From positions 20,088,001 to 20,152,000 of the forward strand of contig OZ004611.1 of the NCBI GenBank assembly GCA_963924565.1: a DNA stretch of 64,000 nucleotides, given 5' to 3'. Below the pieces are notes generated by a model that was not told the origin of the DNA, did not search any database, and was given only the letters and a program-made list of their open reading frames with translations. Shown here in pieces: positions 28,170 through 31,100 of the stretch. This stretch comes from Ascidiella aspersa (taxonomy: Eukaryota). The position numbers and the translations under genes are program-made. Positions within the stretch are counted from its first letter, which is position 1, and the number at the start of each line of letters is the position of its first letter.

Positions 28170-31100
28170 TCAGCTAGAATCTTTCTTCTGTTGGGATTTA
28201 AGCGACCGTCCGTAGATGGAATCTAAGCCCAACCCTGTTAAAAAAACGAAAATAATTTTGTGACGAAATTAAAACACAATTTATTATAGGGTTAAATAAA
28301 TACTATCTATTCTAACATCTAGATATTCTAAATTATTTTTAAGGTGCGCATCTACAAGGTAATAAAAACATTATTATAGGGTTAAATAAATACTAACTAT
28401 TTATTTTTATAAATAAACAAAGATCTAAAACCTAAATGTTTCAAACTAATTTCAAGGTGTCCGTCTACAAAGTGACAGAGATTAATAAAATAAGGTTTCA
28501 AGAAAAATAATAACACACAAATAGTGTCTTACCTGCGAAAACGAGGAAAGTGCTCAACCATTGGCGAGTGCTTAGCGGATTTTGAAAAATAATGACAGAG
28601 CACAAGACAGTGAAAAACTTGCGAGTCGTAGTAATCACGGAACAGGTTAAAGGTCCGAACGTAACAACCTGAAAAAAAAAGTTGACATTTCGTGCTACTG
28701 CTGACAAAATTATGGAACGCAACATGGCAAACCAGGTAAGTGGTTATGAACCCAAACTTATTTTACATTTCAAAAAAAAAAATCACAAAATTTCTCCACT
28801 TACCTGGTTTGCCATGTTGCGTTCCATAATTTTGTGATTTTTTTTTTTTGAAATGTAAAATAAGTTTGGGTTCATAACAACAACACATGATCCGAACAAA
28901 ACCACAAAGGTTGTATAAAAGATCTAAAACAACTTTATTTAACAAAAGCAGAATACTATATAGTTACGCAAAAAAGCATCATCAGTTCTGCTAATTTCTT
29001 ATTCAAATAGACTCTTTTTTGCGTAACTATATAGTATTCTGCTTTTGTTAAATAAAGTTGTTTTAGATCTTATTTACAACCTTTGTGGTTTTGTTCGATC
29101 ATATGATATGGAAAAAAGATCAACAACTAGAAATGTCGGAGCAGGCTTAGATCCCGATATTAACAAAAATAAGAATAATAATAATATTATTATTGTTTCA
29201 TCAACAAGAACAACACAGGATTTGTTTGATTGAAATTGACAGTAGAGTGTGGGTTTAATTTGTATTTTCTTCTTTTACTTGAACTTACAACAAAAATTGA
29301 ACCGTAATACAGAAATGACAAACTACCATTTTTAAAAAAAATTAATTCTCTTTGTTTAAAATAATATCTATTTTTTTTTCAACAAAGGCATTTAAAGGAG
29401 CAACCCAACAGAAGAGTGAGATTCCCAAAAATTCAACACTTACAGTTAAAAATATGTAATGCTGTCCAAAGGCGGAGCAGACGCTGAACATTGCCAAATA
29501 TGTAAGCACTTCGGGGTGCAAAATAACAAACTTCAGAAACAGGATGCCCTGACCGGTTGCTACAAGGCCTTAAAAGAAAATATAGGATTAAAACAGAACT
29601 TTACATAGATGCAAGTTTTTTCCTTTAAATGTGTTGTGATTGCCTAGCACAGAAGTTATTAAACTGGGGTCCATGGACCCCTTTGGTGTCCATGAACTAG
29701 ATTTGGGGGTCCATAAAGGCCTAAGGAAAATAGTAGTGTATATTTTAAAAGTAACCCATTTTTAAAATAAGTTTAATTAAAAATAAAACGTTTTGCAGTG
29801 AATGAAGACTACATTCAATTTTCATATTTTTTGGACAGAAATCAGTAAATTTTAAAGTCTATTGGTATTGTGACGTCATTTTTGATAATTTCTTACAAAT
29901 CGTAGCCCACGCGAAGCCAAAAAAAATATTAAGGGTCTGCTGTAAACAAAGTTTAAGAACCCATGGACTAGCATGTTCACCAAACAAAAACATGCTTGTG
30001 ACAATGCGCCACTACAATAAAGTAAACCCGCATAAGTACCTAAACGGAAGATATGTTTGTTTTAGGTTTTAAAGAACAGTTGGTACTTAAACTGCTTTTC
30101 ATAGTTTAAGGTGTTAATGTTGTGCTGAGAGATATTGTTTACAGTAACTGCCAGGTAAAAATAGTAAATATATTCTTTTGAAAACTCTTTAATCAACATA
30201 CCAATGCCTAGAAGAAGACATGACCACAAGTTGATGTTGTACATCATGTGGTGGTGATTGGTTTGATAAGACGCTCGCATTCGCTCTTGCGTCACCCCGG
30301 TGAAACCATCCAGCGATAATGACACAAGCTGAATTAGAGATAAAACATTTACTTTAAGAATTGAGCCTATGGTCAACATGGTATTTTACTTGAAACTAAA
30401 ATAAGAAATCAAAATAGGAAGGTATGACATTCTTTTGAAGCCTTAGAAATATGCATACAATTTACTGAGGTGAATCATTTTTGTTCACCACAAGAGGTAT
30501 AACTTCTTGGCTCAAATAAAATTCATTAAAACACCTGCAAAACTGGCCTGTACTTTTTACATAAAAATAAAACATCATTGTTTAATTTACAATTAAAAAA
30601 ATAATATATATATATATCTATACATATAAATGTTGAATTACCAATAAAATTTCGCCGAAACCAATCGAAAGCAGGTGATCAGAAACATCAACAGCACTGT
30701 CGGCATGCTTGTCTTTGTAAATAAACCCAGCTACTCCAGTCACGATCATCACAATGAACAAATACTTGGCAAGTGGATAGCGCTTGTGGGCAAATAAAAC
30801 CCCAAGAATCATGACCGGTATGGGCTTGCATGCCTTGCCGATTACCTGGAAGTGAAGTTGGTTTAAAAATAAGCGATCTGGTGAATTATGTTACAACAAC
30901 TAGCAAGGTGCTTAGGATTTGCTTTATAACTTCAGAATTAAACAATACGTGTCTTTTTCTTAAACTATTATCATGCTCTATGTGGAATGTTTTATGTTGG
31001 TAATGTTTTTAAACTGTTTAACTAACCAATATTGTTTTTGAAAAATGTTTTAAAATTAATACCATTTGGTTTGAAAGTTTAGTGAAAAAATATGGTTAAG

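Follow-up and report, generated by a model that had tools for sequence, protein, structure and literature searches.

Penelope-like elements (PLEs) typically leave an inverted, 5'-truncated copy beside their 5' end, and just one of their ends carries a tail (Craig et al. 2021, PMC8557442). Purified PLE protein cleaves and extends both target strands; it has two internal start sites, and the tail is the stretch that separates these (Frangieh et al. 2024, PMC11167929). Both papers cite Cervera & de la Pena 2014 on this group of elements. Among ascidians, Ciona has been described with a single spliced leader (SL), the 16-nt sequence ATTCTATTTGAATAAG (PMC7986045). Our literature search returned no paper tying PLEs to spliced leaders. 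Here we describe a locus within a 64-kb stretch of genomic DNA (the window) at which the two meet, and which we consider very probably to be a Penelope-type composite insertion templated by trans-spliced RNA.

A leader-bearing hairpin in the last intron of an SLC35B1-like gene

We identified, by repeat search, an inverted repeat at 28893-28976 / 29014-29097, with 84 nt of 98% complementarity and 37 nt between the arms, which mismatched pairing carries on to approximately 28887/29102. The 3' part of the hairpin loop (28977-29013) is the complement of AGTCTATTTGAATAAG, which lies on the minus strand at 28998-29013 and is identical to the Ciona SL at 15 of 16 positions. Both searches, for repeats and for motifs, bear out the initial annotation of the locus, which had reported a hairpin at 28887-28976 / 29014-29102 with an SL-like 16-mer ending its 37-nt loop. 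This 16-mer is the sole match to the Ciona SL at two or fewer mismatches in the 64-kb window; as 16 of 100 shuffled windows contained at least one such match, it is weak evidence by itself, and the SL question is decided instead by the genome-wide count of the 14-mer TCTATTTGAATAAG, with 720 occurrences where its reversed control has 6. In the sense of the element the window leader is followed by AAATTAGCAG and by no GT donor, as first reported, and we rejected the possibility that it is itself an SL RNA gene, since true genes have GTAAG at this position. The first base past the SL complement, C29014, pairs with G28976 and is thus templated by the arm, so that the cap-templated origin suggested for it is not needed.

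The hairpin lies in the last intron of a UAA/SLC35B1-like transporter gene, confirming its original placement in an SLC35B1 intron. The minus-strand exons, searched singly, match Pfam UAA (PF08449) in colinear order, and the final exon matches human SLC35B1 at E 1e-17. The exon at 29444-29521, which gave no match when searched singly, was placed by reading frame, and its placement also leans on what we take to be the human SLC35B1 sequence. The SL-bearing arm runs in the sense of the host gene. The features of the locus are as follows, with element positions numbered from the window arms (+1 to +16 leader, body from +17, 3' end near +229):

28669 to 29443, minus strand: host intron, the last of the SLC35B1-like UAA transporter gene; donor GT at 29443-29442, acceptor AG at 28670-28669
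28876 to 28890: left target-site duplication, AACAACAACACATGA, identical at 13 of 15 positions to 29206-29220
28890 to 29013, minus strand: arm with SL and without tail; it covers element +1, the leader's first base, through about +125
28947 to 28992, minus strand: Penelope terminal region, hammerhead-like motif, with AGCAGAA/TTCTGCT as helix I, then CTGATGA and a short helix II
28998 to 29013, minus strand: spliced leader SL-A, 16 nt, with G instead of T at position 2
29014 to 29205, plus strand: direct arm, 5'-truncated at +38, reaching the family 3' end ...TTCATCAAC
29103 to 29205, plus strand: tail, a 3' extension of about 100 nt on the direct arm only
29206 to 29220: right target-site duplication, AAGAACAACACAGGA, pairing with 28876-28890

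Alignment of the window locus (L081) placed the inverted arm at q1-129 and the direct arm at q38-239, with no spacer between the direct arm and the SL arm, and the 3' end of the element, ...TTCATCAAC, carries no poly(A). Identity between the arms is 97-98%; the leader carries one change and the target duplication carries two. The window copy is a typical, dead member of its family.

The hammerhead-like motif has GTAA in place of the core GAAA in every copy read, and its predicted fold retains helices I and II (z -2.0). Rfam searches of the window region and 12 related loci, run both at the gathering score and at E up to 10, yielded no hammerhead, the only matches being generic hairpin ones to microRNA models. 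A retrozyme, in which head-to-tail repeats with active hammerheads give rise to circular RNA, was rejected as an identity for the insertion, as there are no tandem element copies in the window and the hammerhead core deviates.

A local inverted duplication at 28704-28881 directly adjoins the left target duplication. Each of its arms is a circular permutation of a single 82-nt unit, the axes of the inverted repeats lying 82 nt apart, and the unit includes the motif CAG/GTAAGT. This structure is unique in the genome, ruling out that it belongs to the same family.

Two spliced leaders and a Penelope-like parent

At 326 of its 720 genomic sites the 14-mer precedes GTAAG, and these 326 form a tandem array on contig 3 with a period of 584 bp; the 16-mer is, as had been proposed, the species' own spliced leader (SL-A). 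The SL-A array (G000:C3:5218801-5449866) contains gaps of approximately 8 kb every few units, and its orientation flips near 5.40 Mb. We additionally identified a second leader, SL-B, as the 16-mer ATTCATTCGAATTAAG that starts some copies of the family. The 14-mer core of SL-B occurs 2860 times; for 2275 of these the next bases are GTAAG, in a 429-bp tandem array on contig 7 (at G000:C7:14762947-14828009 and beyond), and approximately 585 more are dispersed copies without a donor. The SL-B gene unit, like the full parent element considered below, was read from matched strings. SL-B is, on this arrangement, a predicted second spliced-leader gene family, and ATTCATTCGAATTAAG was not found in the literature searched. 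The presence of SL genes of the Ciona type, with Phallusia among the protein homologues, supports an ascidian-like tunicate as the probable source organism, in agreement with the early placement among ascidians.

The sequence behind the leader, AAATTAGCAGAACTGATGATGC..., was found behind a leader at other loci too. A 27-mer from the 3' part of the family has at least 162 genome occurrences, against 0 for its control, and a pattern from the 5' body at least 326, against 19 for its control; the SL-tagged 3' piece as a whole is approximately 230 nt long, with at least 160-330 occurrences. Six of 30 sampled copies lack the leader (L066, L069, L071, L072, L078 and L089) and share instead an upstream sequence that ends in ...TTTCGTTGTGTTTACAG, a polypyrimidine tract and AG positioned exactly at the leader junction of the other copies. 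This upstream sequence is part of a long element with graded 5' truncation, in which the acceptor, ...TTTACAG directly before AAATTAGCAG, sits approximately 260 nt past a stop codon. The region L071:490-1098 scores 23.2 bits against Pfam GIY-YIG, where the cut-off is 22.6, a 376-aa open reading frame (ORF) in L055 has 108 homologues with RVT_1 and GIY-YIG domains, and the N-terminal part of the parent ORF was found in L070; the window copy and the long parents have their 3' region in common. These domain matches show the autonomous parent to be an endonuclease-positive (EN+) PLE, with a predicted reverse transcriptase and C-terminal GIY-YIG endonuclease. The template of the window copy, initially read as a host mRNA with its UTR, is instead the 3'-terminal RNA of a Penelope-like retrotransposon with hundreds of copies.

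At one locus (L070/L071, G000:C3:16905714-16913160) two like-oriented parent 3' ends are separated by 4.4 kb, and the ORF starts approximately 860 nt past the first. These are possibly a tandem pair forming a pseudo-LTR.

We assigned leader classes by eye in the first 100 of 326 listed 5' regions, obtaining approximately 17 with SL-A, 35 with SL-B, 25 with unspliced upstream sequence and 23 others; SL-B is on this count about twice as frequent on Penelope copies as the Ciona-type leader. One subfamily of 53 exact copies comprises 32 unspliced, 13 SL-B, 6 SL-A and 2 other copies. We rejected the idea that the "TATA" subfamily is self-propagating in leader-bearing form only, as 32 of 53 exact copies have the acceptor-bearing upstream sequence. 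Overall, roughly a third to a half of the copies that keep the acceptor position start with a leader.

SL-A and SL-B are joined at one and the same acceptor, and the SL junction is in each subfamily its own acceptor (ACAG/AAA, ACAG/TTA, GCAG/AATC, GTAG/AATA and GTAG/TATA, with the slash at the junction). Such exact donor and acceptor junctions, in several subfamilies and with two leaders, are as trans-splicing predicts. The leader exactly replaces the sequence upstream of the AG, which argues that the copies were made from trans-spliced, capped RNA of approximately 230 nt. We infer from these junctions that the leader was probably joined to the element RNA by trans-splicing. This upholds the initial annotation, which had the 16-mer joined to its downstream sequence in this way and looked to a parent with an AG acceptor at the SL position: the SL-less sister copies have that acceptor exactly at the junction, and they do not contain the 16-mer genomically.

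In a sister family at L016:1450-1630 the leader is exact, and behind it comes what looks like a canonical hammerhead core (CTGATGA, GCC...GGC, GAAA); pairing of its helix I would involve the final bases of the leader. Inverted repeats of 37 nt flank this unit. It was not scored as a hammerhead by Rfam.

Head-to-head insertions and their proposed origin

We identified an inverted arm adjoining the direct arm in 16 of 29 independent sampled insertions. The loops and inner junctions differ in every one of these composites (junctions at +38, +43, +52, +85, +86 and elsewhere; 0-22 nt of filler), and a target duplication of 10-15 bp surrounds the whole composite in at least 13 other insertions, each with its own. 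These varied junctions and separate duplications argue that the composites are independent single events, and amplification of one composite as a unit was rejected on the same grounds. The window hairpin is therefore not the unique genomic fossil it was initially held to be, as more than half of the sampled family insertions are head-to-head and each was formed independently. Two composites, L085 and L086 (G000:C6:27175687 and C6:27386289), lie 210 kb apart with the same junction and nearly identical flanks, and look like a segmental duplication that carried the insertion along.

In all sampled composites the inverted arm has its outer end at one fixed place, approximately +117 to +133. The 3' ends of family copies fall into two groups, +110-139 and +190-239, with an empty interval between; no sampled inverted arm extends past +138 or carries the tail. 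Identity between the arms of one event ranges from 84 to 99%. In several composites a leader-complete arm meets the other arm with 0-1 nt between, and in many both arms are truncated, so that joining does not require reaching the cap. Near-complete leaders stand head to head on both arms at L040 and C6:15043202/15043236. At C4:12607697/12607720 (G000:C4:12607697-12607754) a perfect loop-less palindrome, read from matched strings, unites two arms that each bear a leader, through SL-B's own AATTCGAATT.

We propose that two cDNAs were joined by a template jump, which we hold to be somewhat more probable than not. The PLE enzyme would nick both target strands and prime a cDNA on each, as purified PLE protein does in vitro. 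One cDNA would begin at the downstream start site and yield the tailed arm, from 29205 back to 29014; the other would begin at the upstream start site and yield the tail-less arm, from 28890 on to 29013. The tail-less cDNA would run to the capped end of the leader, where the polymerase would jump onto the 3' end of the other cDNA, at +38, sealing the arms without a spacer and creating the apparent hairpin. The template may have been one RNA or two, either being compatible with both arms. The original reading had a reverse transcriptase copy a trans-spliced RNA to its 5' end and then continue on cDNA, which we retain, and prime on its own cDNA, which we do not: the SL-less arm reaches approximately 100 nt further 3' than the SL arm, and a cDNA begun at about +125 cannot yield +127 to +229 by copying itself.

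That reading in full, in which reverse transcription of a trans-spliced host mRNA ran to the cap and the cDNA then folded back, self-primed and integrated once, would account for the non-intron sequence after the SL and for a second arm that begins at the very next base. It appears extremely improbable, however, given that the post-SL sequence is repeated at least 160-330 times and has a retrotransposon, not a gene, as its parent, that the SL-less arm cannot be a copy of an SL arm which lacks approximately 100 nt of it, and that the same architecture recurs with different junctions in 16 of 29 events. A processed retrocopy of a host trans-spliced mRNA was rejected likewise, on the copy number (at least 162-326), the retrotransposon parent and the absence of poly(A). 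A true snap-back of Penelope itself, with a single target-primed cDNA that reaches the leader, folds and extends and is trimmed later at its outer end, has more in its favour, as it would explain both the 0-1 nt between a leader-complete arm and its partner in several composites and the 84-99% likeness of the arms of one event. It nevertheless seems unlikely: trimming would scatter the outer end of the inverted arm, which instead falls, in every event, where the tail-less simple copies have their 3' end; the window tail is on the arm that would need to be the copy; and neither the loop-less palindrome at C4:12607697/12607720 nor SL-to-SL junctions can be formed by one strand on itself.

Two family members inserted independently in opposite orientation, or an inverted duplication that arose locally at a later time, might be entertained because the family is abundant and an unrelated inverted duplication adjoins the site at 28704-28881, but a single target duplication surrounds the whole composite, the spacer is absent, and the same layout, with the tail on one arm only, is found in more than half of the events; we give this as little credence as the single host-mRNA event. 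Only slightly less improbable, and still very unlikely, is a route without trans-splicing, in which a master copy inside an SL RNA gene was transcribed from the SL gene promoter. The junctions are exact both at the SL donor and at the AG acceptor that the element itself provides; this is so for two leaders and for five or more subfamilies, whose junction tetranucleotides differ, and no copy has SL-intron sequence between leader and body.

Under the preferred reading, a Penelope-type composite templated by trans-spliced RNA, the leader is a natural marker of cDNA that reached the capped 5' end. The junctions at the first base of the leader, the leader-to-leader junctions and the one-arm tail provide in-genome support for two-strand, two-start-site Penelope priming and cDNA joining, a model so far seen only in vitro for one lizard element. 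The family would also represent a large-scale feed of host SL trans-spliced RNA into retrotransposition in a chordate relative. For annotation of this genome, dispersed leader matches and 80-90-bp hairpins are to be read as Penelope debris and not as genes, microRNA precursors or unique events. A more speculative and, in our estimate, doubtful extension is that the internal trans-splice acceptor is part of the life cycle of the element: the borrowed leader would yield a short, capped, promoter-independent sub-genomic RNA that serves as preferred template, and sense-strand intronic copies, the window copy among them, could be released again by trans-splicing at the AG of the relict leader. If this were so, intronic leader-bearing copies in sense orientation would form a SINE-like parasite that needs no promoter.

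Comparison with known systems

Slamovits & Keeling (2008) reportedly found relict spliced leaders in dinoflagellate genes, attributed to recycled processed cDNAs. As there, we find genomic copies with an SL at the 5' end, a sign of retro-copied trans-spliced RNA; the dinoflagellate cases concern host genes with stacked, truncated leaders, whereas the present copies derive from retrotransposon RNA with a single complete leader and Penelope-type integration.

In the twin priming of L1 that Ostertag & Kazazian (2001) are said to have described, both target strands prime cDNA. The window insertion resembles its products in having an inverted 5' part and a direct 3' part within one target duplication. 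L1 twin priming, however, gives consecutive, essentially non-overlapping segments and poly(A), whereas here the arms overlap by approximately 90 nt, with two fixed internal starts and no poly(A), and we rejected an L1-type twin-priming inversion for this overlap and absence. The R2 reverse transcriptase reportedly performs end-to-end template jumping in vitro (Bibillo & Eickbush). The proposed joining is similar, in that a polymerase having reached its template's 5' end would carry on from the 3' end of a second nucleic acid, with hardly any homology or none and without leaving a spacer; the R2 jump was seen in vitro, whereas the one suggested here is deduced from junctions exactly at the first base of the leader.

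Compared with the ascidian SL RNA gene (PMC7986045, PMC1488885), the window 16-mer agrees at 15 of 16 positions, and the genome's own SL genes have the exact Ciona sequence. The SL RNA gene has a GT donor and an Sm site, whereas the window leader continues into element sequence.

The closest resemblance in structure is to EN+ PLEs, with which the family shares an ORF for reverse transcriptase and C-terminal GIY-YIG, heavy 5' truncation, target duplications, an inverted copy abutting the 5' end, a one-ended tail, and two discrete reverse-transcription start sites. A candidate hammerhead-type motif lies approximately 100 nt upstream of the first start site. The family differs from published PLEs in its tail, of approximately 100 nt against 30-40 nt, and in the non-canonical core of that motif, with GUAA for GAAA. 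It differs from them further in the host SL that begins so large a share of its acceptor-keeping copies, which points to a trans-spliced sub-genomic RNA as the template.
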